Source: Lepidodermella squamata (lineage: Eukaryota > Animalia > Gastrotricha). From it: a DNA stretch of 64,000 nucleotides. A model generated the notes under the pieces. That model saw only the letters and a program-made list of their open reading frames with translations, was not told where the DNA came from and made no database searches. The stretch lies in contig JBLDXI010000012.1 of NCBI GenBank assembly GCA_047495785.1, positions 1,178,001 through 1,242,000 of the forward strand, in the 5' to 3' direction. Positions 1 through 50,520 of the stretch are shown in pieces. Position 1 is the first letter of the stretch, and every line of letters starts with the position of its first letter. Position numbers and translations under genes: made by a program.

Positions 1-3000
1 GCGTGTTAGAGAAATACTTCGCAGTCCCGGTGAGGGTACTTTGAAGATAGGCACAGTCTTGCGGCGCAGGGAATGCTTTGAGAAAATGAGATTTGAGAAG
101 TTATAGGGAACTCCTAAAGACAAAGTCTTACGTTTGCAAACTATGTCAGTTCCAGCGTAAAAGCCAGATCCCAGATCAGGCAATGGCATTCGAATGATAT
201 CTCCACTTTCATACTTGTTAGGGTGGTTACACGTGTGAAGCGTTACTTGCATTGCACCACATAGAGGCGTAGACTTCGCATTGTACGCATCAATAGCAGC
301 TCGGCGTTGAATGGCGAGCGTGATTTCTATCAATGGCGTCGATGAAGCAAAGGCATTCCATACGGCTGTTAAAGGGAGCGAAGGGTCCAGTTTCCCGAAC
401 AAGAACGCAGAGTAGCAAGTCGATGTGGACGTGAACCACCAACCGCCCAGCATAGCCTGAGCACAACCCTGTGATGGGCCCTGGTCTGCAGTTGAAAATT
501 CGAGACCGTTGTGATCGGAAAGGGAGTCGCCTAATAATATCAGTTAAACTGGGTCTTTCAAGTTCATCAAAGGAACTTACCCGCCGTTCCAGCCCCTAAA
601 CGGAATCCAGAGACAAAAAGGCGGTATCCGTCACTTTCACTCGTTATTCTGAAACTGTCGTAGTAAATCGTGGCGGTTTGACCATTATTGGCCTTCATGT
701 ACACCCTTAGCTGATACGAGGCAGAATTAGTGAGCTTGTTCAGATTTTCATTTCCTGTGTAGAAGTCCGAGCCTCCATATCCATTGTTCCCGAAGCCTGC
801 TTTATAGTCAGCCCAGTTCTTTTCGAAGTCAAATGTTTTGACTGTTCGGCGGGCAATTAGCTGAAAAATATAGGTAAGTGTCATGGGATTTCGAAATTTG
901 AAATGCAAACCGTCCATCCTTTCAAGCCAGTTGCATCTGCTGACATTTGACAAGGCAAACGAGTAGCCCCCAAGCCAAAGGGGTACATCCAATACCGAGC
1001 ATCACTCGCAGTTCCACCGTACTGATCCAAAATATGCTTGCAATCAACAGGCTTTTCACCTTTCAAGTATTCCTCAACATTAAGAAGCTCAAACATCAGG
1101 AGAAATCTTACTTGGTCTCTTAATCATCATGACCATAGATTTCAGAGATTCGTAACGGCCCTTCCAGGTAGCCCAATTCATGCCCATTTCGAAGTCACTG
1201 CTGCCGTAGGCGCCATTCACATTCGACTCGAGGCAGTAGCCACTATTGACAGCGTACATGTCTTGATCGTAAAACCAACCACCACTACGACTCTTTGGGC
1301 AATAATCGCTGCTGGACTTATCATAGGTTTTAAATGTTTTGGTTTTGTGAACCGAAAGGCTGTCGCCTTAATTGAGGAAAATTTGCGCTATGTTTCCTCC
1401 TAAAAATTGGACTTACCAGGAGTTTCGATTTCCGATGTGACATAGCTCCCAAAATTCAAATCATACAGCGTAGTAGAATCTCCGATGATAAAGCTTGTGT
1501 AATACGCTGTTCGCTTCTCCCCTGTGTAGTCTTCCATCACGATAGCTAAAGTGTATGGCAGATTGGTTTTCTTGAAGTCGGTTAGAGTGCGTATGTTGTC
1601 ATTCCCTAAGTAGAAATTTCCACTCGGGTTGCCGAATCCTTTTGCATAGGTGTCCCAGTTTTGAGTGAAGTTGACTGTACCGTCGTAGTGTCGTGCAATG
1701 GATGTCCAACCACCTCCTAACGCAGCCATGTCGCAGTACACATACACCGTAGTCGAAAGAGAGACATCTGTCGGGTAGATGCGATAGACACCCGAACCAG
1801 CGGTAGGATTATTCTGCAATATATCTTCGCAGTCGACTGGGTACGGGTACGTAGGGAAGAAAGCTGGGTAGATAATACAGAAAATGGCTTGGCGATAAGG
1901 ATATTCATAAAAAATGATTACTAGGCAAAGAGTAAGGCATCGGTGATCGGCGGATCATCATTTTAGCTGTTTTGACCGATTCTAGATAGCCCTTGAAGGC
2001 GTACCAGTTGATTCCCTGCCCATAATCTCGCGACCCATAAATTCCGTTAAGATTACTGAAACGGATGTGATTGAATGCCAGCAGGTTCAGAAAAGAAATT
2101 AATTTTGCTATTCACTGACCTGTGATGACAACCATTGTACCACCAAGCTCCATAGTACTTTGTTGCGCACTGATAAACGTTGTCTTTATCCTTGGTTGCG
2201 AAAGGCATATTGTTATGCACTGCCAAGGAGTCTCCAGCGTTCCCGCAAACGAAGTTGCCCAATCTCAACCTGTAGTTATCGCTCTCGTTTTCAATCAAGA
2301 AGCTGTCATAATTAGCGATGGCTATCGTGTCGTCGAAAGCCGTCAAAACAACCAGTAGAGAATATTTATTTATTCCAGCAGTAAGTCTATTGATGTTGTC
2401 GTTCCCGAACCAAAAGTTGGTCGACAAAAATCCGAAACCGGCCTTGTACGTCGCCCAGGTTTGGTAGAAATCTTGAGTCTTATCAACGCGACGCTGGATC
2501 ACAGTCCAGCCACCCCCGAATGCAGTCATTTCGCAGTAAACCTTCATCGCCGCTTGCCCTGGAGGATAGATCGTGTACTCGCCACTAGGTAAGCTAGGCT
2601 GATGGAAGGCCAAGTCCTCGCAGTCGATGGGTTGGAATGACCACTGCTCTATTGTCAAAAAATTAGAGTATAGGCATATAGAAATTTCTCTCCAGTTATG
2701 TCCTACCGCAATGCTCCCATGGATTAGAAACGCTCGAAGTTTGATAATTAGTTTTGTATCCGATTGGACACAAACACTTGCACCCGTCTGAGTTGGTACA
2801 ACAAGTCGAGCAAGAAGCATGTGGAGGGCATCCAAATATCTTCATTCTCATGACACTTTGAGTGAGAAACTGCAGGGGCTGTATTCGCAATACACTAGTC
2901 CGAATGGGCGGGCAAAACCTTGCAGAAACGTAGTTGTTCGGTGATCTTCCGCGGCCTCCTGCTATAGGCTATCAAAATGCGACATAATTTTTTCATACTA

Positions 3001-22481: not shown

Positions 22482-24133
22482 ATGCTTTTAGCTATGCCTT
22501 CATATTTTCTCCTCATTGGATATTTTCTCATCGCTCTTCCCACAAGCGCTCTCGCAGGAGGATTTCGAAAATTTGTCCTAACAGGTAAAAGCTCTGAAAC
22601 CAAGTTCCTGATGACGTAAATTTCCGTTTCCGGCAGATATGCCATGCTGTAATGACAGAGAATCCGCGCGAAATCTTGGCCATCTGCAATCTCAAGGTGC
22701 TGAATTAGATCTGCTGAGGTCGATTACTGGTGGCAGCTACAGTAAATGGGTAAAGCCCCGTGCTGTCAAAGGATCGAACTTACTAGTCCAAACTAGGCTC
22801 TACCTAATCAGAATTCAAGAGTTGGACGAGGCCACTGAGACATTTTACTCCACCGTCCGGTTTCAAATCGTGAGGCATTCTTGACTTCCCACGATTTTAA
22901 TACCCCATGTTATTTAGAATTGGCAAGACCCTGCATTATCATGGGATCCACTTGCGTTCGGAAATCTGACGTCTCTGGTAGTCCCAGGTGGCGTCTTGTG
23001 GCTTCCTGATTTGCAAATAGTCAACGCCGTGGATGAGATGTACGAATTGTTACATGACGCCAGCTTTTCTTACCGAGTCTACAGTGATGGTAACGTCTGG
23101 TTCCATCCAACGGGGAAAATTGCAACGCGGTGCCGCTTCGATCTGATGTTCTACCCTTTCGACTTCCAAAGATGTCTCATAATCGTCGAATCTGTTATAT
23201 ACGCGACTGATGAGTTGAGACTTATCATTCGCGAGAACAAAACTGACCCGATATCACTCGGAATGCTTGCTGAAAACGAGTTGTGGGAGCTCCTACCTGA
23301 GTACTGCAATGCTTACTCAACAAGATATCGTAGCGGTTCGAAAACAGAGTTTAGTAGAGTCATATTCAGCATAGTCATGAAGCGAAGGCCGAATTTCTAC
23401 ATAATGACAATCATTGTCCCAACTGCCCTCCTGGCTATAGTTACGGTCTTCACCTACTTGGTACCGATTCATTACGTGGATCGAACAATTCAAAGTGTGA
23501 CAGTTCTGCTGGCTGTTGCAGTTTTTGAAGCTGCGATAGCGGATGATTTGCCCAAGACCTCTGAACACTGCATGCTTACGATTTATCTGACCCTGATTCT
23601 AGCGACTTCAGGGGTTACGATCTTCACCTCGACGTTATGTCTAGCGTTGGTGGACCCTGGCGAATATATCGACGCGCCTTGGGGCTTGCCGAATCTCTTT
23701 AGCGCTATATTCTGCAAACCATGCAAGAAGAAAGGGGGTAAGAAGTTGAAATCAACTCATGCTCCAGACGGGGCCAACTCTTCGGATGATACTCCTGCTC
23801 CTGCTACTGAGAATGGTGTGGCGTCTTTTCGAAAGCCTTCAAAAGTAACGAGGCGTTTTATTTCAATCATCTTTTTGTATTATTTCCTTTTAGAAAAAGC
23901 GAATGGAGCTGGTGCCACATCACCAATACGAACCAGAGCGATATCTTAGCACGAGCAAGGCCATGTGGTACACGGCTTATTTAATCAATTGGGCGGCATT
24001 TTTTCTATGCGTCGCTGCGTCTCTTGCCATACCTATTGCCTCGTTTGTGTTCAGGCCTACAGCCCCGAAAAACGAGACAGCTCCTGGATTAGGCTACTAT
24101 ATGGATGGATATTATGGATTCTCTTCAGTGTAA
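22482..24133 (+). CDS. Cys-loop ligand-gated ion channel subunit (nAChR-like, non-alpha, divergent), 4 exons
   Basis: Signal peptide from ATG 22482. Motifs WQDPALSW, LWLPDL, Cys-loop CRFDLMFYPFDFQRC, M1 after RRPNFY, M2 DRTIQSVTVLLAVAVF, LPKTS linker, M3, and M4 in the last exon (23894-24133). Confidence 0.9.
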
Positions 24134-24779: not shown

Positions 24780-25983
24780 TTAAACTTGGTGCAAATCAGA
24801 ATAATCACTAGTTTTTCGCACTGAGACTCTTATTGATGAGAATATGTGCCCGATAGAATAGCATATAGGAGAGATGCAGCAGTCTGTTAGAACTTCGAAG
24901 AACTTTCTCGCCAGTCCTAGATTGATCATAAACTGGCGGAAGCACGGCACGCAGCACCAGATGTGGCAGAAAGCCATGCAGGCGAAATAGAATGCCCAGC
25001 AGACGGCGGCTGGAATGGCGCAGATTAACGCGATGATGCGGTATGTCCATAACTTGACCAGTGTGAACGATTGGTACGAGGCACGCCAGATGAAATCAAA
25101 ACTGTAGATTGTTGGGTGGGGCTCGGCGAATATCTCTTCGAAGGCAACCTATAGGATAAAAATAAATAAATCGAAGACACTACATTCCTTTCTCTCAGCG
25201 GGATACAAGTTAACGATCCCTTTTTCAACAATAGAACCCATACTTTTCAACCAACTGGATACTGGAGGAATAACATATCGCAAAAGTTATAATCAGCCTT
25301 TTAAAACGTTAGAATCCCCACTGTCAAACTTATAATTTCCAATAATTGTCCTATTGAGGCTATGGTAACAGGAGCTTCTCTTCACCAAAGGTAACCCGAA
25401 TCCTGAATTCCGGATTCAATGTAAAAGATTCCCCCTTCTTGAATTGTCACTGACAATTTTTTCTTGAAGGCTAAGTTTGGGGTTAGATTTTAGGAATTTG
25501 AGTTCTTTAGGTTCAAAAATAGACCGACCATCCAAAGATGTCTCTTCGATTTCCTATAAAATCTTCTTTCCTATCATTCCGTGGATGCAGGACTTCGTTA
25601 TTCAAAGGATAAAGTTCAGCAATGCAAAGAATGCTTACCTTGAGATGCTGATTGATGAACTCGGGATCGCGGTTGAAAAAATCTATATTGGTAGCTATCG
25701 GTACAGATTTTTTACTGCCACTGTCTTCTGTTACGGCGAATTCCACTGATTTCGTAGACTCGGGGCCATTGTGGTGACTTTTCGTTGGAGTAACAGCTCT
25801 AATGCTGCTCGGACGACTCCCCCTAGCGCTCTGATTCTCAATGCTCCGAGGCGATGCCGGGGAAGTCCTGCTACCATGTACTTCAAGAGCAGCGAGCTCT
25901 ACGCCTTCTTCGCCAGGTTTTGAGTCGTCTGGTGGTGACAGGATGATTTCGTGATGTAGCTCGTCTTTACTCTCATCCATCAT
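24780..25983 (-). CDS. Caveolin (canonical-like), 2 coding exons (25983-25639, 25148-24780)
   Basis: IDFFNRDPEFINQHLK|VAFEEIFAEP (caveolin signature FEDVIAEP), YSFDFIWRASY, WTYRIIALICAIPAAVCWA, HIWCCVPC, IFSSIRVSV. Confidence 0.93.
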
Positions 25984-29585: not shown

Positions 29586-30124
29586 ATGATTTCTTCAAAG
29601 TTCTGCTTCGTTTTTGCTGGCATTTTCGCATTGACAGCGGCACGTGTCGATGACAAGTGTATGAGCTGCATTTGTCAGGTATTCAGAGATAATCCAAGTT
29701 TTTCAATTATTATCCGAGTTTTTTTAAGGTGGAGAGCAACTGCAATGTGAATATCGGCTGTAAAATGGACGTCGGCTCGCTGTCTTGCGGTCCTTACCAA
29801 ATCAAGGAAGCCTATCACACCGATTGCAAGGCGAAAGGCGGCGTCGATTCCGATTGGAAAAAGTGCACAGGTACTATGGCGTGTTCAGAGAAGTGCGTCC
29901 AAAATTACATGGACCGTTACGGTACTTCATGCACTGGTGGCAAGACACCAACTTGTGAGGTAGTTTCAGCAAGCATTTTTCTTCTGCAGCTTCGCCGTAC
30001 TAATTATTGCGTCTTTAATTAGGACCACGCCCGGATTCACAACGGAGGCCCGAAAGGTTGTAAATCAACCGCGACTGATGGTTACTGGAAAAAAGTCAAA
30101 GCCTGTCTCGACAAGTCGGGTTAA
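29586..30124 (+). CDS. Invertebrate (i-type) lysozyme / destabilase, 3 exons
   Basis: Signal peptide, then CMSCICQVESNC, CKMDVGSLSCGPYQIKEAY, CSEKCVQNYMDRY, CEDHARIHNGGPKGC, YWKKVKAC. A TATA-like ctataaat lies about 60 bp upstream. Confidence 0.95.
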
Positions 30125-33546: not shown

Positions 33547-36451
33547 ATGTCAGAGTCGGTTGTTGTCATATCCGGGAAACCGGCGACGACGGATTACGCC
33601 GCCGGGGTTCGACCGATCGATCTAAACAACCGCGATCCGCTCACCATTCACGACCCTTCTACATTCAAGGTATGAGATGAGCAATGAAATTACTTTTGAA
33701 GAAATTCGAAACCTGAAAAACAGATGAAGGGCGCGTTTTATTATTCTCGTTTTGTGTATATGTTCAAACTCGATGGAGATGATTTCGGGGTCGAATATCA
33801 TCGCCGACGCGCTAGATAATGGCCGATAACTGGCCTTATGACGTGCATGTAGCGTCTTATATTGATCGGCGCGACTTGAGTTCGATATATTAAATCGTGC
33901 TCGGCTCAGGAAGAAAAAGCCGCGCGCAGCAGATCATCCTCTGCTATATATTTTGCGACTAATTTCATCATCCCTCGAATTATTTTCCCACGTCATCAAA
34001 TAGAACTGAGGCTCATTACCATTTTTTGCGGCGAAAAAAAAATTGCACGGAGAATTTTAACTGAATATATGCCGCAATTTTGTAGCTCGTCTCGTAAAAA
34101 TTAAGGAAATTATCGTTTTTAATAACAATTTTTCGAAAATTTATTAAAATTTCGTTGTCTATTCGTTATTATTATTTACCCCGGCAAAATTGTGCACTCA
34201 AGCCCGGGCGGTGATTATATGCTAGATAGCCCATCATCGCCACAACCGGCGCCTTTATTTACGCTTCACGCTACTGTCGAAGAGCTACACGAAAACGATC
34301 AACAAGTCTATCTAAGCGGCCGAGCTGGCCAGCAGAGCAGTTCTGGGACCAAAAGTAAACCAAATCGTAGCAATAGATCGAACACGGCGGCTAAACGCTA
34401 CCAAATGACAGCTGTTGGCCCGACTAACGACAACTCGTTGGCCATGGCAGCCGCTCATTACGAGGCATCGGCCAAAAATTCGAATGGAGAAGACACTAAT
34501 AAATTACCTGTTGTTATCGAAGAAACAAGCCTGCCGTCTTCGTCTGCTACGTCACCGTACGCTGTTGCGAAATCGGGCCAACACGGCCCGCCAGCTTATT
34601 CAACCCAGCAGGCCAAGGATACTAGAGACCCGCCCCTGCCAAATAGAGCGTATCGGACTGGGGATTCTGCGAATAGTGCGGGTATTGACGATCCGGCTCA
34701 TAGCATATCGGCTTCGATAACTAATCTAGGGGTCAATTATATAGCCGGGGATAATAACAACAGACCGTCACGATCGCGCTACGACGGCCGATATGACACC
34801 AATATTCGCGATCCTGTTCCTATGAATCACGTTCTTTCAGTAATTACAGAAAAATTTGCATAAAATTAATTAATTTAGGAAAAATATTATTTTTAATTAC
34901 ATTTCAAATTCGTTTTTTCCTCTATTAACAGGTTGCTTTCGAAGAGATTTTCGCTGAGCCTCACCCTGGTGTCTATTCGTTCGATTGGGTATGGAAGGTA
35001 AGAACAGGAATCGATCGCCGATTGCTAGATGATTTTTCGATTTTTCGATTTTTTAGGCCTCGTTCACAATTTTCAACTTTATGCGGCTATGGACCTATCG
35101 CATTCTCTCGATTTGCGGCATTATCAGCGCGTGTTGTTACGGCTGCGAATTCGGCTACACAGCTTGCTGTATTATCTGGTGCTACACGCCATGCCTTAAG
35201 TTGTGGGTCCTACAAATGGGTCTGGTCAAACAGGTACGCAAATTTTCGCAAATTTTCCAATTGTTACCCACCCAGATTGCCCGTCGAAAAAAACCACCGA
35301 TTATGGAATTAGCCTTTCATTTTTTAGTTTGCCCCGTAGAACCCTAATTTTGAAGTGATTGATTTGCCAACTGACCTATACCCTAATATAATAATACTTT
35401 GAACTCACCTTTTACTACCCCAACTTCAGTTGCTATGAATTTCTCTGTTTATTATTGTTTTCTTTTGTTCTTTCACCACAAACAAATTCGATGCCTGCGA
35501 TGACAGATGTTAGCCGTATGCATCGATGTGTGTCTAAGACCGTTTATCAATGTCTGGTCATATTTCTTTTACAACATTCGCGTTACAATCGTTCGCGGTG
35601 GTGGCGGCGGCGATATGGCATGATGAGTTATTATGAGCAAGGCGACGAACGGGAATGGACGGCAATAATGATGATAAACACAGATAATAACCGTCGTAGC
35701 ATAGCGTTTTTGTTCTGGTTTTTTTACCGCACACTGCTTATAATTTAGAAGGACAAACCACCTTAAGCTTTATTAGCCTTATAATTATTATCGCCGAAAA
35801 AATGCGCGCAAATGCTTTTCAACTACCGCATTGATTTTTCCAACATTCTTTGGCTTCCTTTTATCACACTATACGAGATTTTCTACTTCATAGTCACTTT
35901 CTGTATACCTGTGTGTGCTGACATTGATTTGTTTTATTTTTCGGCGATTCAACCGGCTATCGTAATAGCTGGCTTTGAAAGGCAGAAGCAAATAATGATG
36001 ATGACAAACGGTGCCCAATGTACATGTATTCGACATTGATTATATTTACAGAGAAAATATAATTAATATTATAATTTATTTTGTGTATTATCAATGTCAT
36101 GATCGCTTGAAAAATCGCTTGCTTGTATAATGAGCGACATGAAGTTACGAAAAAACCAAAAAGGAAAGCAATAAAGAGCAGTTTTTGCTACGAAATTTTC
36201 GAGTTTTGTGCAAGTTGAACGGCGGTAAGTTCAAGAACCTGATCCAACCACATCCCATCAAACAATGTTGTCCACTTAATTTATTAATTTCGCTTATTAG
36301 CTAATTTTCTGAATTTTTTTTCCAGATTATTGTCGTCTGCATAGAGACGTGTATTTCACCGTTTATACACGCAATATCGATGCTGCTTTGGAATATTCGA
36401 GTAACCGTCGTGAGAAGCGCGAATCCTGCCGACTTTTCGTCCATCGCTTAA
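33547..36451 (+). CDS. Divergent caveolin with apparent alternative first exons (33547-33669; 34219-34839), shared exons (34932-34997, 35057-35233) and alternative last exons (35507-35623; 36326-36451)
   Basis: Exon 1a ends DLNNRDPLTIHDPSTFK|gt and exon 1b ends DTNIRDPVPMNHVLS|gt. The shared core reads VAFEEIFAEPHPGVYSFDWVWK|ASF...WTYRILS...IWCYTPC. The two terminal exons are MLAVCIDVCLRP...YNIRVTIV...* and IIVVCIETCISP...WNIRVTVV...*. All junctions are phase 0. Confidence 0.85.
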
Positions 36452-37655
36452 CGAAACCTCAAGATATTTTCTTCCTAAAAATATAAATGTTTGCTATATC
36501 GTCCCGCGGAAACACTCGCTGTTATGATCTGTCCAAAATATTTTGTAAACAACGAAAAATATTAATAACCGGCTAACATTAACATTTGTACGCTTGTTTT
36601 ATGAATTATGAATAATATTATGGTGCCAAGTTTTGAAGGCGAGAAATAAAGTGAACAATATTTTTTCTTATTATCTAAAAACTGCGTGTGAAAAATTGAG
36701 AGTTTACCGAGTGCACACCCTAAATACATATGTGGCTCCAGACTATATTTGAGGGTCCAGCTCTAGATTTTCTCAAAATTTGGTTTTATCGATTTATTTC
36801 GATTTTAAGTATCGATTGGAACAAATCAGTGATTTTCCGATACCAAATATCGCACATCAATTTTGCCAATACTTCTCTCACCCGTCGGCCTACTTTCGAT
36901 TTTTGAGAAAAAATTCCCGAAATGCCAGAAAATAATCGGTCACCCAAGGTACTAGCTTCCGAATTCGCTTTTCCGAAGTCGATTCGATTATCGATTTGTG
37001 ATTTTGGAGGCTCGAAAACTGAAATCACCCCTCTGTATCTGCTCACGCAGGTGGAACCTTGGCAACTTTATTTTACATGAAAATGAAGGTAGAGCTAGGA
37101 TTTGTTCAGGTAGAACGGCCGATTATAAATGGTCCAAGTCCTGGTGGCTGGACGGCAAAAAAGAGTGGTTTTCGTTGTCTTTGAAAGACTAGAGGCAGTC
37201 GGATTTCGTCGTCTGATTCTTCAGAGTTTTTTTGACAGTTTCGGCGGACAACATTTTACTCCTATTTATACGGTAATACGGGAATTTTTCGATACAAATA
37301 ATAACATAGCCATTGCCGATGAGTTCATTGTCTTTACTTATATCAAACTTTCGTTAAAACAGGGGTTGATCCATGTTGAGTAGGAACTTTGATTCAAGCT
37401 AAATAAAGTCACCAGTATTAATTCTCTTCAACGTAGTTCAATTCTTCACACACAAATAACAGAGCATGCAAAAAGGCAAACATGGTGCCGCCGGTAAAGA
37501 CGCAGATCTTTATCAGTGGCTGGATCTAGATATGGTGCATGAGAGATCATCACATCATGACAAGTAAGAAGGAAAAGTGTAGCAAGTTGATTTGGTCTAT
37601 GTTTTAATAAGATTATAGTGTCCGTTTTGATAGAGGGTTGGATGGTTGTCGCGAA

Positions 37656-39537
<1,882 letters not shown>

Positions 39538-41025
39538 GTTGGACGATGAAGGAAAAAACCTTATGTAAAGTGTGCGCTATTCAAGATGAAAATTCGAATA
39601 ATGATGATAGCGTGGTTTAAATGAGGCCGTTCAAAGCAATAAAATCTCAATGCCCATAAAAGGTCATGTCAAAAAAGTAGAGAAGCACGCGCTAACACAT
39701 TTCTCGCACGTGCCAACGTGCTACAAACGGCCAAAATTGAAAATGGCGATTTTTTTAGAAATTAAGACCTTTCGAATGCCTAACCCAGGGGGGTAGAGTG
39801 AAAAAGCAGCATGAAGTGGAAAATGCGAAACGAGCTTCTCATCATTTTGACCACTCTTCATAGCCTTTCATCGAACTGAGGTTGAAATAAACTGTTTTCA
39901 GTTTTGGCACCGCCGATTTTGAAAATCAAGTCGCCGAGAGAAGATGAGAAACGATTTGAGCATAAATGATTCAGAGTCATACATGACAGAGGTGGTAATC
40001 GATTAAAAAATCAATAAATTAAAGGGAAAACTGCAAATAAAGCTTTTGAATGCCCGACGTTAAAACATTTTGCTGTTTGTTCGTTGGCCTGGGTTGTTTT
40101 TCGAAAAAACTCTTGCGAAATGAATGAATCCGTTCAGCAAATATGGCATGACTCTTCATATCAAATGTAGTTGCGGGATGCAAACTAGCAAAAGCATTTT
40201 ACGTTCTGACACGTTTTACGACAAATCCTACAAAAAATGCTACTGCTTTCCTTGCGGACGGTCTAAAATAAGGTTTATAAGGCAGGCAGATCGTAGAATT
40301 TGAATATAACTGATTACAAAAACCATGGATACAAGCAGGCAAAGATGATTGAACCTTCAAATTAACTTGATAGGTAGTTACTAAAAGGTTCTAATAGATA
40401 GTTTGAAAGAAAGCCGACGTTATATATGTCAGGTCTACAGCTGAAAACAAGGTCGCGCAATGAAACTATTTGTTGCCGAAGCGATATATTTGGTGTTGAG
40501 TGTCAGATGTTGTCATTTGAATCAGGTGTCAAATGCTGTCTTTTCATTGTGAGTGTCAAAAATTGTCGTTTGACAATGCCAGATGTCGTTTGCATTTGGC
40601 GCCGCAGCGAGCGCGCGTGGCTAGCGGCGGACGAATATCGGCTTCGGCAACAATTAGTTTTACCGGAAACTCTGAATTTTACCCAGCAACCTGATTTTAA
40701 TTTCAGAATTAATATTATTAATTTATTATCACATATTTTTTTTAATGTTTCTACCAGCAACTGCTCACCGGTTGAATTAAACCGACATTATTAGTGACGA
40801 GGTAAACGAAGGTGCGAACTGAAAGCTGCATGACACATTCGTTCACCTCATAAGCGGTTCCGTTCGGTTCAGCTAATCTGATTCAGCAAAATGATGGAAA
40901 AAAAATAATAAAGAGAATCTTCCCATTATATAGCTTGGGGAATCGAACCACCGCCCCATGTATTCCTAATAAGCAAATGACTCAGTGGTTAGATTCTATT
41001 ACCTTTGAGCTCTCCCAAATAAATA

Positions 41026-41588
41026 CCGTATTTCTCGAAAATTTACCGCGGGCTATATTTATGAACAAATGATTTTTGATTCGGGTTGTATTAGGGAGTG
41101 GGGATATATACGGGTGTGCTGTTTAATTGCGAATCATCACAAAAAGCCGCGAGCAATTCGTATTAAGACGACGTTTTTAGATTGTTTTATTTGTCGATTC
41201 AGTGAAAAAGTGAAAAAGTTAACAATTTTTTGATCAACCAACAAAATCAATTATCAATAAAAAAAAAGTCAGGTTCACTTTCGTCATCGTTGAAATCATC
41301 CAGGCTGATGACTTGATCGAACGTGTCGTTTGATGCCATCTTCGAAGCCAGTAGCTCTCGGCCAGCAGCGCACGGCTTTCCATCCTTGAAGCGATAGCTA
41401 ATCACTGATTACGATAATGCGTCATTAATAAGGCTTTTCTTTTGTTCCAACGCATGCTTCGCCCAAATTAAAATAGCTGTGGTACAATTTCGAGGCCTGG
41501 GTTAAATATGAACAAACGATTTTTTCGTCGGGTTGTATTAGGGAGCGGGGATATATACAGGTGTGTCGTATATTTTCGAGAAATACGG
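41026..41588. mobile_element. Tc2/pogo-like (Tc1/mariner superfamily) non-autonomous element
   Basis: Perfect 17-bp TIRs (CCGTATTTCTCGAAAAT ... ATTTTCGAGAAATACGG) with TA on both sides. A subterminal direct repeat of about 55 bp (atgaacaaa.gattttt...tcgggttgtattagggag.ggggatatatac.ggtgtg) sits near both ends. Confidence 0.85.
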
Positions 41589-42106
41589 TATTTCTAAGCT
41601 AGTTTGGAAATTTGTTAATGACCTGTTGGTACTTGCAAGTAGAAATATGGGGAGAAATATGAGCATATGACTTATGAACCGTAGGGTCGGTTCCAGATGG
41701 GCCAAAAAGCGGCGAAAGTAGAAAGTTTCGCAGCGCGATTTCTGGTCCTGGTCTTAGTTCGGCTAGGTTCACCTCTTTGCTGGTTGGCTCTTATTTGTCC
41801 GCTTCCATTCACGTAGCAGTTTTCTAGTTCATGCCAGTTCTCCTTGTGCCTAAAAGTTCATCTCCGTTCATCATGACTACTAGCCGCTCATCAGATTCGT
41901 GCCCAGAATGTTGAACATACTTATTTAACATTTCGTAATCGGGAAAATATTGGTAAAAAATGGCCAAATGTTCATTAAAAAGCTTTTTTATCCTCCAAAT
42001 TTATTTTATTCGGCCTCATTCAACAGGATAACTCACAACTCACAATTCCAGAGAAAAAACTTTCTCCACATCCCGCCTTTCACGTCTGCATCCCATAGCG
42101 ATCGAT

Positions 42107-42797
42107 CTAGGGTTTGTAAAAGTAGATGTCACCAGGAGCAGGCATGGCAATTTTAGGTTCTTCACATTGGCGGTAGAATATGCAGTGCCCCGAGCTTTTT
42201 TTGGCAATGCCACGGCAACCCTTTATGAGCGTGTGGCAAAAAAAAGCGCAATCTGCGATCGTGTTAAAATCTGACGCTATGCCCATCGGGCCTGTGCACT
42301 TGTAGTCGACCGGCCATAATCGATTAACGTCTGAAAATAAGGGAAACTCGTCATCATGATAAATCGAGGACTTGATATTCCAGAAACGAATTTCCGTCTG
42401 GAAATTATTCAATGATATTCCGGTGAACTTACTTTCATTCTTCTCATAGACTTGAAAACCCTTAGGCACTTCGGCAGTCTTGTTAGTGCAGTTAGCGCCC
42501 CACAGGCTCAATTGGCAAGTTTTCGTCGCATTGTTGTGGGCAAATGCGATGCATGATCTGTTCAGCAGGCATGACTTCTCACATTCGGCGAAAGGCTGTT
42601 CGAGCGTTGAATAGACACTATCGCATGAGTATTTTAATCGTATGAAATTGGGCTTGCTTGGCAAACCAATCTTGTCCATGTTGCTTAAAGCAGCATCTGT
42701 TACACAGGTAAATCGTGCGTAACGCACCTTACAAGAAATACGCTCACTCACCAACCGCAACAACGAAACCTAACAGAAAAGCAAGCTTTGAAAACAT
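42107..42797 (-). CDS. Secreted PAN/apple-domain protein (two PAN-like modules)
   Basis: Signal exon MFSKLAFLLGFVVAV|gtgagt. Then ECEKSCLLNRSCIAFAHNNATKTCQL and IADCAFFCHTLIKGCRGIAKKSSGHCIFY (CxxxC...C...C pattern). Confidence 0.7.
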
Positions 42798-43699
42798 TTT
42801 CAACTAATTTTTCAAGAAAGCTGAGAGATATGCGAAATAGCTCGGGCAAACCGAGTTTTTATAAGCTTTTCGATTCTTCTCCGCGTTGCCACGTCAGCTT
42901 TTTACCCAATGCGATGTGTGCTAGTTATCCAGCTGGTTCGGCTTCTTCCACCTTGCACACACGCCGGTAGTGCTGCCTTGACGTCAATGGTATTACCGAC
43001 AGCGCCAATTTGACGCCAAGCGCCTTCGTTGTGCATCAATGCGTCGCTGGTATAATATCTGATGACGCACGTCATCTAGAAAAATCCTGAAGCTGACCCA
43101 ATTTTTTTATGTCGAATATTTTATTTCGATTATTTCTAAATATTTTATTTCGAATACAGCTATAAGTTGAAAGTAGCTCCCAAGTTCGTGTTCGTTTTGT
43201 TTTGCAGTGGCCGGACTGCAGTGGCAAGTTTATTATTAATCGACCAATAGCGTGCGAGCAGTTAATTTTCAACTGGCCTTTTTGGCCGGAGGAAACCACC
43301 TGGCTGTGCGACATAACAGCAGGAACACTGTGCACCTTTTGTGCACCTTTTCGCTGTTTTGTCGCGAAATAAAAAATTTGCTGTTTTGTCGCCGTACCAG
43401 AAACCCACCGCGGCAACCGCTTGCCGACTGAAAAAATGCCTCTTTTATTTAGTGGTGAGACCTACTCACCCTATTTTGTTCCTAGAATTGGGCTGGCAGA
43501 CCAAGCATCGGGAGTTGAAATTGAAAACGAAGTTAAGAATTCAGCGCTTCTCGAAAAACAGGAAATATCTCAAGAAATCGAGAACCAGATCTAAAGCGTG
43601 GTAACTTGGGTTCATTTTTGAATGAAAAATATTCTCTACAATAAATCATAATTAAATTTTCCCCTAATAATTGAATTAGTCGAGATTTGCGTCGTATGG

Positions 43700-43782
43700 G
43701 CAATATTGATGCGAATTTCAAATATTTGGGTAACTGCCATGAAAAATCGCGAATCCTAACCGACCTTTTGTCCATCGCTTAA
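43700..43782 (+). pseudogene. Decayed copy of the caveolin terminal exon at 36326-36451
   Basis: gcaatattgatgcgaatttcaaatatttgggtaactgccatgaaaaatcgcgaatcctaaccgaccttttgtccatcgcttaa aligns to gcaatatcgatgctgctttggaatattcgagtaaccgtcgtgagaagcgcgaatcctgccgacttttcgtccatcgcttaa, with frameshifting insertions. Confidence 0.7.
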
Positions 43783-44314
43783 TGAAAAGATAAGATAACA
43801 TTTTTCCGCGGTCTGATTTTTTCGTAAAAAGCGAAAAAAGCTGGAGCCAATAACTTCGCTTTATTTTTATTTTTAATTATAAATATCAGGTGTTGTGACT
43901 GATTTGTCATCACGAGAAAATAAATCAAAATAAACGGAACATTCAAAGACGAGAAACTAGAACGAGCAGTAATTATTTGCTGCCTAGCAATTATGAGTAA
44001 ACAAAAGTCTATGCATCACGCGACTGGGATCCGGAGCTCAACGCGGTCAGCCGTGTGATTGTAAAAATTGCGATGAAAATGACCAATAATATAATCAGCG
44101 TAAATGTATTGCAATGAGCTGGTGCCGGTCGGTGCGAACTTTTCGAAATTTTTATAATAAAAATCAAATACACCGGAGGGAGGAAAAATGCTGTCCTGTC
44201 AACGGTAACCAAGGAAACGATCGTTATTTATACACACATCGGAAAAATTGGCGGTATCGTTATTCGAATGATATTCCTACAAGAAATGTACATATATGAC
44301 CTCATTATAATCGA

Positions 44315-44877
44315 ATGTCTCGAGTAAGCCCTGAGCCTGGAGCTGATCAGAGTAGAAATTTTTTAGATCTGCAAGATCGCGATCCCAAAACAGTTCATGA
44401 TCCTCTGTTTTTCAAAGTTGGATTGAAGCACCAATTTTTGCCAATATAATTTTTGTTTATCAGGTAGCCTGGCCTGATATTTTTGCGGAGCCAGATCCTG
44501 GTGTTTATAGCTTTCCAAAAGTCTGGGCGGCATCATACGCAGTTTTCAACTTCTCGCGCCTATGGACCTATCGAATTTGTAGCGTTTTCGGCGTGCTATC
44601 GGCATGCTGTTTCGGCTTCGAATACGGCTGTACCGCCTGTTACACAATTTGGTGTTGCACTCCAGGTCTAAACGTTACACGGTTACAATGCTTTCCTGTG
44701 AAAATGGTATAAAAAATAATATCCTTCTTAATTTTTTATTAATCCAGTTTCTCTTTCAAGGGGCTAACAATTATTCTCGACTCGTGTCTTCAACCCTGCA
44801 TCAATGCTATTTCTTACTTATTTTATAACATCAGAGTGACTATAGTTAAAGGAGAGGCCAATAATGACGTCGTTTAA
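44315..44877 (+). CDS. Divergent caveolin paralog, 3 exons
   Basis: MSRVSPEP...LDLQDRDPKTVHDPLFFK|VAWPDIFAEPDPGVYSF...WTYRICS...GFEYG...IWCCTP...|...FYNIRVTIVKGEANNDVV*. Confidence 0.88.
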
Positions 44878-44924
44878 TCGAAAATAATTGCCAACATTTT
44901 AGAATTTTTTTTTAACACCCGAAA

Positions 44925-45463
44925 ATGTCGATGACTTTGAACATGGAGCACCGTGATCCGAAAAAGGTCTATGACCCAGAGACATTTCGAGTCGCGTGGG
45001 AAACCGTGTTCGCCGAGCCTGACCCGGGTGTTCACTCGTTATCACCGATCTGGAGTGCCGCCTATATCACCTTCGACTGGGTTCGACTTTGGACTTACCG
45101 AGTACTTTCTATTTTCGGCGTTGTAGCCGCGTGTTGTTGGGGGTTCGAATACGGCTGTACAGGTTAGTGATTTATTCAATTTTTTTCAACCATGTTAAGA
45201 TTTTTCTTAAAATATAGCTTGTTACACAATATGGTGTGTTACCCCGTTCTTCCGGCTCTGTCAAATGCGGTGTATTCCCGTTAAGGCTGTGAGATTTTTT
45301 ATAATTTTTATATATATTTTTCATAATTCGATATTTTTTCCCACAGTGCATCACAATTTGCCTGGATACATGTTACAGACCATGTATCAACGTGTTTTCC
45401 TACTTACTATGGAACATTCGCGTGACAACGGCCAAGCAAGAGGGCCCTACCCAGAATATATAG
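44925..45463 (+). CDS. Divergent caveolin paralog, 3 exons
   Basis: MSMTLNMEHRDPKKVYDPETFRVAWETVFAEPDPGVHS...WTYRVLS...GFEYGCT|ACYTIWCVTP...|...WNIRVTTAKQEGPTQNI*. Confidence 0.88.
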
Positions 45464-45715
45464 TCTGTGATGTAAATTTTACTTCAAACCACAAATCATA
45501 GCCGTAATTTTTGTTAAAATTTCCTATCACGTGTTCATTTCTGCAGTAAAAATGAAAGGAGGAGAATTATTGATATGGTTGAAAAGAAAAACATTTGTCA
45601 TTCGCTCCTTGGTAACGTTAATCGATATTTGGCACCAGGAAACGAAGCCTGGCTACAAGCATCCGAAATGCATCATTTATTCGTATATTCAAGTTCCGCT
45701 CAACGTTAAAATACC

Positions 45716-46290
45716 ATGTCTAAGGTTAGCCCGAGTGAGTCTCCTATCAGTTCGATGGCGAACAGTCTCGACTACGGAAATCGAGACCCAAAAATCATTC
45801 ACGATAAAGAACATTTTCAGGTAAATAAAATAATTGTAGTGAACAAATTACCAAACAATTTTCCTTATTAAGGTGGACTTCAGTGACATTTTCGGTGAGC
45901 CCGATCCAGGGGTTCACAGTTTCAAAGGCGTTTGGAAGGCTTCTTACCTTGTTTTTAGCTACACCCGGCTGTGGACCTACCGAATTCTGTCGATTTTCGG
46001 CGTGATCAGTGCGCTGTGCTTTGGTCTGGAATATGGATGTACAGCTTGCTACATGATCTGGTGTTGCTGGCCATGCCTCAAGCTTAGCAACATTTGCGTC
46101 CTCCCAATTAGAAAGGTTCGAGAATTATTATAAAAAATCGGAAGAATTTCTTAATTAATTCTGTTATTTTCAACAGATATTCGAAATTTGCCTCAATACT
46201 TGCGTCATGCCATGCATCCGGGCTATATCTATGCTTTTTTGGAACATCAGAGTGGTTGTAGCAAAAGATGCTGGAGCCGCGAATGTTTGA
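45716..46290 (+). CDS. Divergent caveolin paralog, 3 exons
   Basis: MSKVSPSE...LDYGNRDPKIIHDKEHFQ|VDFSDIFGEPDPGVHSF...WTYRILS...GLEYG...IWCCWPC...|...FWNIRVVVAKDAGAANV*. Confidence 0.88.
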
Positions 46291-46691
46291 ACTGTTGAGA
46301 AAAAATGATGAAATAAAATTATCAAATAAAAGCATATTTTCAAATAATTTTCTTTTATATAAAATTGTCTATAAATTTGCCTGCCTATATAATCGGGTTA
46401 AAGCATCATATCGGAAATTAATGAAGAATCGATTAAGGCGATGGTATTAAATATTAATATGATTTATACCGACATTGACTGAAACATCTATTCTTACACG
46501 GCATTGTTCGTCTTCATATGATTTAGAAGGCAATCGAACGGCTCGGTTGCTGCAAAACAGTGCGCAAGGCGTTGCCCAGGGTGTGACATTACGTAGCAAC
46601 TATTTAACAAGGCGGCTTATAAATAAAAAGCGCGTTGTACCTACACTTTACAAGTAAGCAAACACTTAGCTTTTTTCTGGAATTTTCCACC

Positions 46692-47189
46692 ATGACTGAA
46701 ATCGACGCTAGTCGTCTAAATTATGGCGAGCGAGATCCGAAAGAAATTCACGACCCAACCCAGTTTCAGGTGGCTTGGGAGGAAGTTTTTGCCGAGCCTG
46801 ATCCGGGCGTTCATTCGCTGAAAGGAGTCTGGCGTGCCTCTTACCTTGTCTTCAGCTACGTAAGGCTATGGACCTATCGACTGCTTAGCATCCTCGGCGT
46901 CATTCAAGCCTGCTGCTGTGGTATCGAGTATGGCTGCGTGGCTTGCACAAGTAAATTTATTTTAAATAATAAAATTAGCCCGACTAATTTTTCTTGATAT
47001 GTTATAGTTATCTGGTGTTGGATTCCGTGTTTGAAGTTGTGCCAAATTCAGCTTATTCCTATCAGGAAGTGCTTTTCGATTTGTCTCGATACATGTATTG
47101 CTCCGTGTATCCATGCAATGTCGATGTTGTTCTGGAACATTCGCGTTACCATGGCGAAAGACGATGGGAAAGGCGTCCAGCAAGTTTGA
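46692..47189 (+). CDS. Divergent caveolin paralog, 2 exons
   Basis: MTEIDASRLNYGERDPKEIHDPTQFQVAWEEVFAEPDPGVHS...WTYRLLS...GIEYG...|IWCWIPC...FWNIRVTMAKDDGKGVQQV*. Confidence 0.88.
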
Positions 47190-48934: not shown

Positions 48935-50520
48935 ATGGCCTGCTCTTTCGCTAACAACACTTCGTCCGTCCTGTCGGCTGGTTTCGACGGTCTTGCTGCC
49001 AAGCTCGGCCAATACAACCAATCTGGTCTGGCTGGCATCAACGCCGCCTCGGCTGCCACTGGCTTCGGCGCCAACAGCAACGTCTTTGGTGGTGTTCTCG
49101 GCGGTAACGGTAACGGTAACAACTGGGCTGGTGCCTACAACAACGGCCTCGTCGGCGGTCAGATCAACGCCAACAACGTCGCTGCTCAGGTCGGCGCCAA
49201 GATCGGCGCCCTGATCGGCCAGGAGTACGGTGCTCAGCTCGGTGCTGCCATCGCCGGCCAGCTGAACGCCACCTTCGGAGCCCAGTGGGCCGCCCAGCTG
49301 GGAGCTGCCTACGGCGCCGAGGTCGTCGCCGACTTGGGTGCCCAACTTGCCGTCTTCGCTGCCGCCACCGGATTCGGCGCCCAGTCGACCGCCCAGCAGG
49401 GTGCCCAGTGGGGTGCTCAGGCCGGCGCCCAGTTGGCCGCTGTTCTGGCTGCCAAGCTCGGCGGACAGGCTGCCGCTGCTGGTGCCTTCTTCGCCAACAA
49501 CCAGGCCGTCGCTCAGATCGGCGCCGCGATCATCTCGCAGGCTGGTGCCAAGCTGGGTGCCTGCGTCGCTGCCCAGATCAACGGCGGTGCCTTCGGTGCT
49601 GGTGCCAACGTCGCTGGCAACTTCGGCGGCTTCAACGCCCTAAACAACGGTCTGTTCGGTGGCCTGAACAGCTACAACGCCGGCCTCTTCGGAGCCAACC
49701 AGTTCAACAACTTCGGTGGTAACGTCAACAGCTTGGCTGGTGCCTACAACAACGGCCTCTTCGGTGGTGCCAACAACTTCTCTGGCCTCTTCGGTGGCAA
49801 CGCTGCCTTCAACGGTCAGTTCTCTGGCAACCAGCTGAACAACTTCGGAGCCAACTCCTTCGGCAGCCTCTTCGGCGGTGCCAACACCTTCGCCAACCAG
49901 GCTGGTCTCTTCGGCGGCAACATCAACGGCCTCTTCAACTCGCAGGCTGCCGCCGACAAGCTGTACAACATCGCCTTCCGCCCGTCCAGCCAGGCCGAGC
50001 TCTACACCCTGACCAACCCGGTGCAGTACGTCGACAACCAGGGCAACCGCCAGCTGTTCCTCGCCTTCGAGCTCAAGGGCTTCAAGCCTGAGGAGGTCGC
50101 CGTCACCCTGAACAAGGCCGAGCGCGCCGTCGTCGTCGAGGCTGCCCACGAGGCCAAGGACGGCAAGGAGCACACCGTCGCCCGCAAGTACTCGCGCAAG
50201 TTCGTCCTGCCCGAGGTGAGCTATTGAATCATTTCCAACTTGAAATGCTTATTTTTCTATATTTTCAGACCCTCGCCAAGGTCGAACTGGCCAAGGTTGA
50301 GCTCAAGTCGCAGCTGAATGCCAACGGCTTCCTGACCATCGAGGCCGAGCTGCCGAAGCTGAGCGCCGAGGAGATCGCCAAGCTGCCGGTTTCGTCGTCT
50401 CAGCTGCTCAACGCCGCTGCTCTGAACAACAGCAACGTCTACGGCAACGTCTTCGGTGGCAACAACGTCTACAGCAACATCGCCAACGCCGTCAAGCCCG
50501 TCACCGTCAAGACCGCCTAA
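48935..50520 (+). CDS. Small heat-shock protein (alpha-crystallin domain) with a 340-aa G/A/N/F-rich N-terminal extension (copy 1), 2 exons
   Basis: The C-terminal ACD reads LAFELKGFKPEEVAVTL...VVVEAAHE...RKYSRKFVLPE|...LKSQLNANGFLTIEAELP and ends with an IxI-like VKPVTVKTA. The N-terminus has GAQLGA repeats and GLFG repeats. Confidence 0.9.

Follow-up and report, generated by a model that had tools for sequence, protein, structure and literature searches.

Caveolins assemble into disc-shaped oligomers of about 11 protomers and bend membranes. Human, sea-urchin, and choanoflagellate caveolins have been produced in E. coli. A locus in the genome of the gastrotrich Lepidodermella squamata encodes five plus-strand caveolins with a remodeled intramembrane segment, raising the question of whether these proteins form a distinct, functional class and, if so, whether their discs are built differently. 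The initial annotation of the locus had proposed a lineage-specific class with altered disc geometry, possibly sensitive to pH or ions, or hetero-oligomeric.

Gene content of the caveolin locus

Of the six matches to the caveolin signature motif in the window (the whole 64-kb stretch of DNA analyzed), all but one are on the plus strand (Table 1). The plus-strand genes, denoted G1 to G5, were modeled with canonical GT-AG introns and encode intact proteins. G1 (33.5–35.6 kb) lies apart from the tandem array of G2 to G5 (44.3–47.2 kb), in which the stop codon of G2 and the start of G3 are 47 nt apart; a TTTTAG occurs 26 nt ahead of the ATG of G3. Together with G0, the canonical-type neighbor on the minus strand, the six genes are found inside 23 kb. 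The main exons of all these genes reached the gathering score of Pfam family PF01146 (25 bits), with 28.8–69.1 bits for the exon pieces of G1 to G5 and 111 bits for G0; G1 exon 2 and the last exon of G5, both very short, fall below this cut-off when scored separately. For G1, exon 3 matched the family at 1.4e-6 and exon 2 at 1.4e-3. All five genes of the initial annotation were reproduced, but the span cited for them, 33547–47189, is not purely caveolin and includes unrelated genes, namely those for beta-tubulin and a PAN-domain protein.

Table 1. Features of the caveolin locus and orthologues in a relative. Positions are those of the window, except for the orthologues.
Feature	Position	Strand	Description
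G0	24780–25983	-	canonical-type neighbor; exons 25983–25639, 25148–24780; 237 aa; Pfam 4.6e-32
G1	33547–35623	+	exons 33547–33669, 34932–34997, 35057–35233, 35507–35623; 160 aa, short isoform
G1 alternative long 5' exon (probable)	34219–34839	+	open frame; donor GTAATT at 34840
G1 alternative 3' exon (probable)	36326–36451	+	tblastn match; acceptor ...TTTTCCAG
beta-tubulin	37656–39537	-	unrelated gene between G1 and G2
PAN-domain ORF	42107–42763	-	unrelated, between G1 and G2
G2	44315–44877	+	exons 44315–44416, 44464–44706, 44761–44877; 153 aa; GT-AG model
G3	44925–45463	+	exons 44925–45162, 45218–45288, 45347–45463; 141 aa; GT-AG model
G4	45716–46290	+	exons 45716–45820, 45873–46115, 46177–46290; 153 aa; GT-AG model
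G5	46692–47189	+	exons 46692–46950, 47008–47189; 146 aa; GT-AG model
Glu codons	G1 35147–35149; G2 44620–44622; G3 45147–45149; G4 46029–46031; G5 46926–46928	+	from the sequence
R0	P0004		orthologue of G0
R1	P0003 in L003/L004		orthologue of G1
R2	L001 1800–2299		orthologue of G2
R3	P0152/P0002		orthologue of G3; intronless
R4	L001 3410–3927		orthologue of G4
R5	P0151		orthologue of G5; intronless; 78% identical

Two additional exons, both absent from the initial annotation, probably belong to G1. The 207 amino acids encoded by the long 5' exon are disordered, include an RDP motif of the pin type, and end in ...NIRDPVPMNHVLS; the donor of this exon would probably join exon 2 at 34932. The orthologue R1 has a homologous long N-terminus that shares the motif LHATV[AE]EL and is contiguous with the core. 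The 3' segment encodes an alternative spoke end and beta-strand (IIVVCIETCISPFIHAISMLLWNIRVTVV...) and matches the C-terminal exons of G1, G4, and G5 (tblastn E-values 1e-8 to 3e-8). An open homologue of this segment is located 3' of R1 in L003/L004, and the segment probably serves as an exon of G1.

A shortened hinge without proline

In human CAV1, helix 1 spans residues 89–107 and is connected by a loop (108–110) to helix 2 (111–130) (Porta et al. 2022, PMC9094659). In G1 to G5, the spacing between LWTYR and IW..P is 24 residues with no proline, whereas G0 has 25 residues including CAIPAAVCW; the reported absence of a P110 equivalent and the shortening by one residue were both recovered in all five genes. 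For comparison, we used 120 representative clusters outside this group, drawn from the best 150 matches in a library of 1.84 billion proteins. The one-residue deletion, which maps to the helix-1/helix-2 junction, was found in none of these 120 clusters. P110 is present in 110 of them and missing in 10, so that, at least among the best 150 matches, it is typical of caveolins, not universal. All 10 members of the divergent clade (the five genes and their five orthologues) combine the deletion, at the end of helix 1, with replacement of the hinge proline by I, V, L, or F, and G108 is kept. Judging from these alignments, the combination is unique to the clade among the 120 outside clusters from the best 150 matches.

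Conserved sequence elements of the caveolin disc

Han et al. (2025, PMC12330381) classify human CAV1 as Type II-CAV, the only type in which a pin motif precedes the hook on its N-terminal side. G1 to G5 are assigned to this type because they keep the pin motif, which in all 10 clade members begins with RDP and continues with the conserved pattern [IV][HY]D[PKR]xxF[KQR]. Also shared with human CAV1 are the signature motif with the hook ([FW]xx[IV]F[AG]EP), the WTYR scaffolding helix, the small-residue ladder A112/G116/A120 (A/G/G(A), invariant in the clade alignment), W128, P132 (IW..P in all), and the xIRV sequence of the putative C-terminal strand, connected to P132 by a spoke of equal length; NIRV(T/V) in the clade and NVRI in human CAV1 are equally far from P132. 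The P132 equivalent and the NIRV sequence are retained in all five proteins, as the initial annotation had it. Exon 2 of G4 aligned with human CAV1 (7SC0) at an E-value of 1.2e-15, with a gap at A105 and the changes P110 to I and Y118 to E. As far as such alignments indicate, every sequence element that builds the human caveolin disc is kept in G1 to G5.

The differences from human CAV1 comprise the missing A105 residue, an aliphatic residue at P110, Glu at Y118, Gly at A120, one extra residue in AEPDPGVH, and a much higher Cys content. The pin-to-signature linker is 12 residues long in the clade, compared with 11 in human CAV1 and 10 in G0, the latter being the most common length outside the clade, and G2 to G5 have gained a proline at the C143 position. 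Mapped onto the human structure, all of the clade changes would lie at the disc rim.

Two features highlighted in the initial annotation do not define the subfamily. The signature motifs of G1 to G5 are FEEIFAEP, WPDIFAEP, WETVFAEP, FSDIFGEP, and WEEVFAEP, and W indeed replaces F in G2, G3, and G5, but the residue flips between orthologues (W in G2 and F in R2, W in G3 and Y in R3, F in G4 and W in R4); in the 120 outside clusters from the best 150 matches, F occupies the first position in 114, W in 4, and Y in 2. Likewise, the five proteins contain 10–12 cysteines, but the 122-residue core of G0 has 10, and a quarter of the outside caveolins are equally rich, so that Cys content does not separate the clade.

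The glutamate in helix 2

The Glu inside the hydrophobic segment (GCEFG, GFEYG, GFEYG, GLEYG, and GIEYG in G1 to G5, respectively), which corresponds to human Y118, had been described as invariant. This holds for the five window genes but only for three of the five orthologues, R2 having Gln and R3 Ser. The equivalent position is polar (Y/H/S/T/N/Q/E) in 64 of the 120 outside clusters from the best 150 matches, 6 of which, including Macrostomum lignano and Antedon mediterranea, have Glu; these six are unrelated and retain P110 or the normal spacing. A literature search for caveolin Y118 matched only papers on Y118 of paxillin. The position is generally polar and variable, with Glu no special trait of the subfamily.

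A112, G116, and A120 permit crossing with helix 1 of the neighboring protomer on the cytoplasmic side (PMC9094659). By a helical-wheel argument, the Glu (Gln or Ser in the two orthologues) would point away from this small-residue face of helix 2 and, close to the rim, would give the membrane-facing surface a polar or negative ring. Charged rings have precedents in many caveolins, about 60% of modeled caveolin discs bearing them on the membrane face (PMC12330381), and the ring proposed here would be a further variant. The Glu could, instead, sense pH, ions, or lipid headgroups and confer a new mode of regulation on the disc. Its presence in all five window genes and three orthologues is compatible with such a role. 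If it faced the membrane, each disc would bury a ring of about 11 carboxylates, and the authors of PMC12330381 acknowledge not knowing what the charged rings of caveolin discs do. However, the substitutions in R2 and R3, and the polar variability of the position outside the clade, with Glu in six unrelated clusters, make this very improbable. We favor the charged-ring variant, in which the Glu would not be a dedicated pH or ion sensor.

Orthologues and selection

Close relatives of G1 to G5 were represented by only three clusters among the best 150 matches, all of them 1:1 orthologues from metagenome contigs of one relative; within these matches, this genome and that relative are the only known sources of the clade. 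A clade-profile search of metagenome contigs from JGI retrieved no relatives. A four-gene array in the same order and orientation is present on a 12-kb contig of the relative. The orthologous proteins are 61–78% identical, with pN of 0.16–0.26 against pS of 0.78–0.85; between paralogues, pN is 0.27–0.37 and pS is saturated. The orthologous genes are under purifying selection.

These data bear on the idea that the five genes are decaying or unexpressed duplicates. A word-index protein search with the G5 ORF gave no candidates, which is uninformative in this respect. Five open frames with canonical splice sites, the conservation of amino acid sequence despite saturated synonymous sites, and the maintenance of the array in the relative render this idea scarcely credible. 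G1 to G5 instead have the hallmarks of intact genes, predicted to be spliced, that encode a distinct, conserved caveolin subfamily.

Phylogeny and origin of the clade

The divergent caveolins form a clade with a support of 100 and a stem of 0.78–0.81, G1 being the earliest-branching member (supports are SH-aLRT values from quick tree searches). Along with the hinge that is unique among the 120 clusters, this bears out the proposal of a distinct conserved class. In the best trees, the clade is the sister group of G0/R0 (support 90–92). G0 and P0004 share with it a phase-0 intron before the signature motif and a similar Cys pattern, and VAFEEIFAEPHP is common to G1 and G0. Unlike the clade, G0 keeps the hinge proline, Tyr 118, and Ala 120, and a long disordered N-terminus is its only form.

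The nearest named relatives in profile searches are the Macrostomum lignano proteins A0A267GQL3 and PAA75353.1 (P0005 and P0007; 82 and 80 bits). These spiralian caveolins are Cys-rich and have Glu at the same position (GIEFAC), but they keep P110 and normal spacing and fall outside the clade. A second spiralian group, including proteins of Intoshia linei (A0A177AXB7, annotated as 'Caveolin-2') and Owenia fusiformis (A0A8J1T7U8), offers another possible origin, namely that the clade is part of this older group and not an offshoot of G0. Several of its members lack P110, and motifs of the GCxFGC type, Gly at position 120, and PxRK in the spoke recur in it; local resemblance to the clade is seen in P0069, P0074, P0120, P0150, P0090, and P0098, and P0090 both lacks the proline and has Glu. 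A union of the two was not rejected by the AU test (delta lnL 4.15, p 0.387), run on a 52-row set in place of the full 132-row set, and deep nodes of published caveolin trees are likewise polytomies (PMC12330381). Nevertheless, the group has the normal 25-residue spacing and forms a separate clade in the best trees, which place the divergent clade beside G0/R0; the one-residue deletion occurs in no member (0 of 120 outside clusters, best 150 matches). Furthermore, AEPHP and near-identical signature exons are common to G1/R1 and G0/R0, and all six genes lie in close proximity. We therefore consider an older spiralian origin rather unlikely.

The reading that we prefer, with a probability of roughly 0.7 on the sequence evidence, is that the five genes encode functional Type II-CAV caveolins that form an old, conserved clade, probably within Gastrotricha, and that a G0-like canonical gene, duplicated locally, is the most likely ancestor of this clade.

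Disc architecture

Given the retained elements, the clade proteins would still form membrane-embedded amphipathic discs, in which the helix-1/helix-2 junction and the hook would be repacked. In human CAV1, the P110A mutation is reported to disturb topology and compactness (Brandmier and Glover, 2025 preprint, PMC12265636, which also cites earlier work from the Epand laboratory), so a proline-less caveolin might fold differently. P110A is an engineered single change, whereas in the clade, the loss of the proline is natural, is coupled to the deletion and other rim changes, and has been kept by selection in ten genes across the two species.

AlphaFold2 monomer models of R5 (P0151, pLDDT 83.8) and R0 (P0004:105-248, pLDDT 84.4) both contain one continuous helix through the hinge and are silent on geometry, given that the divergent and canonical types do not differ in this respect. 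No strand was modeled at the C-terminal NIRV, as expected without partner chains. A Foldseek search of the PDB with the R5 model gave no match, and a wide VIA-align search returned only generic long-helix and coiled-coil matches (Z ~6); for a single long helix, neither result is informative.

The deletion, the proline loss, and the longer hook could jointly alter the assembly architecture, and co-expressed G2 to G5 could additionally form hetero-oligomeric discs; this scenario seems unlikely to us. Under it, the number of protomers or the curvature of the disc could differ, or the proteins could adopt a P110A-like transmembrane topology. Co-expression would fit the tight tandem spacing of G2 to G5, notably the short gap between G2 and G3, and the spliced-leader operons proposed for this genome.

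Implications for the caveolin family

The clade is a real new subfamily variant of the known caveolin family. It adds a caveolin expansion for Gastrotricha, which the caveolin papers cited here do not mention, and the polar, variable position 118 tempers any reading of a 'buried glutamate'. P110 is regarded as a critical hinge of CAV1, and P110A is disruptive, yet the 2022 disc structure left the role of the hinge unclear. Ten naturally selected caveolins from two species that lack this proline and have a compensating one-residue deletion provide a natural test case for the role of the hinge in disc assembly, protomer number, and curvature.

Identification of caveolin genes in the window and in a relative

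A six-frame motif scan of the window identified six caveolin signature motifs. Five are on the plus strand, in the divergent genes G1-G5, and the single minus-strand motif is in the canonical-type neighbor G0; gene models for all six were constructed from the window DNA. All introns are GT-AG, the majority 47-61 nt long; the GC content of the window is about 43%, and that published for the L. squamata assembly is 43% (PMC11660948). Every main caveolin exon exceeded the Pfam PF01146 cut-off, and human caveolin-1 (7SC0) aligned with G4 exon 2 at E 1.2e-15; in this alignment, A105 faces a one-residue gap, P110 faces Ile, and Y118 faces Glu. Single exons or database proteins served as input for searches and folding, and translations joined from window coordinates were used for alignment, trees, and substitution counts.

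Caveolin genes, their orthologs in the relative (R2-R5; metagenome contigs L001 and L003), and neighboring genes
Feature	Sequence	Coordinates	Strand	Length	Phase-0 intron boundary
G0	window	25983-25639, 25148-24780	-	237 aa	
G1	window	33547-33669, 34932-34997, 35057-35233, 35507-35623	+	160 aa	35233/35507
G1 putative alternative long first exon	window	34219-34839	+		
G1 putative alternative last exon	window	36326-36451	+		
G2	window	44315-44416, 44464-44706, 44761-44877	+	153 aa	44706/44761
G3	window	44925-45162, 45218-45288, 45347-45463	+	141 aa	45288/45347
G4	window	45716-45820, 45873-46115, 46177-46290	+	153 aa	46115/46177
G5	window	46692-46950, 47008-47189	+	146 aa	
R2	L001	1800-2299			
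R3	L001	2475-2900			
R4	L001	3410-3927			3748/3808
R5	L001	4652-5095			
G1-locus alternative pieces	L003	about 511-582, 889-1638, 2079-2183			
Cys-loop ligand-gated channel fragment	window	22996-23949	+		
Destabilase/i-type lysozyme	window	29586-30022	+		
Beta-tubulin, spliced	window	37656-39537	-		
PAN-domain ORF	window	42107-42763	-		
HSP20-domain protein, long Gly/Asn/Ala-rich region	window	48935-50227	+		

A profile built from the five main exons and compared with 1.84 billion representative proteins produced 304 matches at E <= 0.001, three of them above 120 bits; the next-best match (83 bits) is the G0 ortholog. Two ENA metagenome assemblies are the source of the three close clusters, which represent one organism. 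On its contig L001, R2-R5 form a four-gene array with the order and orientation of G2-G5 (62-78% identity), and the G1 ortholog (R1) is on contigs L003 and L004. In ortholog pairs, pS is 0.78-0.85 (saturated) and pN is 0.16-0.26; in paralog pairs, pN is 0.27-0.37. Rather than decaying copies, these are old genes maintained by purifying selection.

Hinge deletion and proline loss as the hallmark of the clade

The loss of the intramembrane proline and the one-residue shortening described in the initial annotation are both borne out by the G1-G5 sequences, as is the retention of P132 and the NIRV sequence. For comparison, 120 representative caveolin clusters outside the clade (G1-G5 and orthologs R1-R5), drawn from the best 150 profile matches, were aligned in human CAV1 numbering. 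Proline occupies position 110 in 110 of these 120 clusters and in 0/10 clade members; the deletion is present in 0/120 vs 10/10, and Gly120 in 7/120 vs 9/10.

The remaining proposed traits fared differently in the same set. All five window proteins contain the GxE[YF]G motif, but the supposedly invariant glutamate (position 118) is Gln in R2 and Ser in R3 and is found in 6/120 outside clusters, compared with 8/10 clade members. Glu118 recurs in unrelated clusters with P110 or normal spacing (P0005, P0007, P0070, P0090, P0091, and P0124): P110 is retained in the Macrostomum lignano (P0005 and P0007) and Antedon mediterranea (P0070) caveolins, and P0090 combines Glu with the absence of proline. 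With L in 32 outside clusters, Y in 30, H in 9, S in 7, E in 6, Q in 6, and rarer residues in others, position 118 is polar (Y included) in 64/120 and is apparently a hotspot for polar residues in helix 2 of caveolins generally. The F-to-W change holds for three window signature motifs but not as a clade trait: F, W, and Y are exchanged at this position between orthologs, and W starts the motif in 4/120 outside clusters. Cysteine richness is not distinguishing, given that 30/120 outside clusters have at least 9 core cysteines and G0 has 10. Because these counts separate the deletion and proline loss, and not Glu, W, or Cys content, the former two are the true hallmark of the clade.

Phylogeny and origin

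In trees of 132 and 52 rows (SH-aLRT support), the ten clade members group together (SH-aLRT 100, stem 0.78-0.81 in both), with G1/R1 as the first branch. G0 and its ortholog R0 form the sister group (support 90-92), and the setting of the clade is spiralian, considering that, among named sequences, the closest outgroups belong to the annelid Owenia, the mollusc Gigantopelta, and the flatworm Macrostomum. Proline-less members with GCxFGC and PxRK motifs are also scattered through a second group of spiralian caveolins, that of Intoshia 'Caveolin-2' and an Owenia paralog. Local derivation from G0 is favored by the sister-group support but not proven, since forcing the clade together with this second group costs only 4.15 lnL (AU p 0.387).

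Gene structure

G1 apparently has alternative exons at both ends. Its first exon would be either the short one at 33547 or a long, disordered one at 34219 with its own RDP pin motif, and either of two last exons would encode the spoke end and predicted NIRV strand. Each of these four pieces is open and has been conserved at the G1 locus of the relative. A phase-0 intron before the last ~38 codons, common to G1-G4, R1, and R4 but missing from G0, looks like a derived clade character. The relative's orthologs of G0 (P0004), G3, and G5 are intronless, and their window counterparts have one or two introns; those in the hydrophobic segment of G3 (after GCT) and G5 (after GCVACT), both phase 1, lie three codons apart. 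Together, these differences suggest that introns have recently been gained, lost, or slid.

The gap between the G2 stop and the G3 ATG is only 47 nt long (44878-44924; 175 nt in the relative) and contains AATAAT, as well as TTTTAG 26 nt before the ATG; this spacing is operon-like.

Predicted disc architecture

In the human disc, helix 1 (89-107), a loop (108-110), and helix 2 (111-130) are arranged such that small residues A112, G116, and A120 permit helix crossing, W128 plugs the cavity at the interhelical loop, and palmitoylated cysteines are on the membrane face (Porta et al. 2022, PMC9094659). The clade retains the RDP pin motif, signature motif, WTYR, small-residue ladder (A/G/G), W128, P132, spoke length, and the NIRV sequence of the predicted C-terminal strand. 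The changes are all at the rim: a helix-1 end shorter by one residue, loss of the hinge proline with G108 kept, Gly120, a pin-to-signature linker of 12 residues vs 10 in G0 (mode elsewhere, 10), and, in G2-G5, Pro at the C143 position. We infer a coordinated repacking of the rim in what would otherwise be an ordinary caveolin disc.

On a helix wheel (100 degrees per residue), about 200 degrees separate position 118 from the small-residue face, so that it may point towards the membrane side, where Glu, Gln, or Ser could form a polar ring near the rim. Charged rings on the membrane face, several built by a single Glu or Asp and of unknown function, occur in ~60% of modeled caveolin discs, including human Cav1 (Han et al. 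2025, PMC12330381); the clade Glu thus varies a pattern that has already been described, and the Gln of R2 and Ser of R3 at this site speak against a dedicated sensor.

AlphaFold2 monomers of R5 (P0151) and canonical R0 both showed a single helix through the hinge, and structure searches with the R5 model gave no useful match. There is a small chance that the proline-less clade adopts a different topology; P110A in human CAV1 is reported to disturb topology and compactness (PMC12265636), making a natural proline-less clade worth experiment.

We found no paper on this clade, and the L. squamata genome paper (PMC11660948) does not mention caveolin. The clade is a real, conserved, previously undescribed subfamily of the known caveolin family, distinguished by a unique one-residue deletion coupled with loss of the hinge proline.
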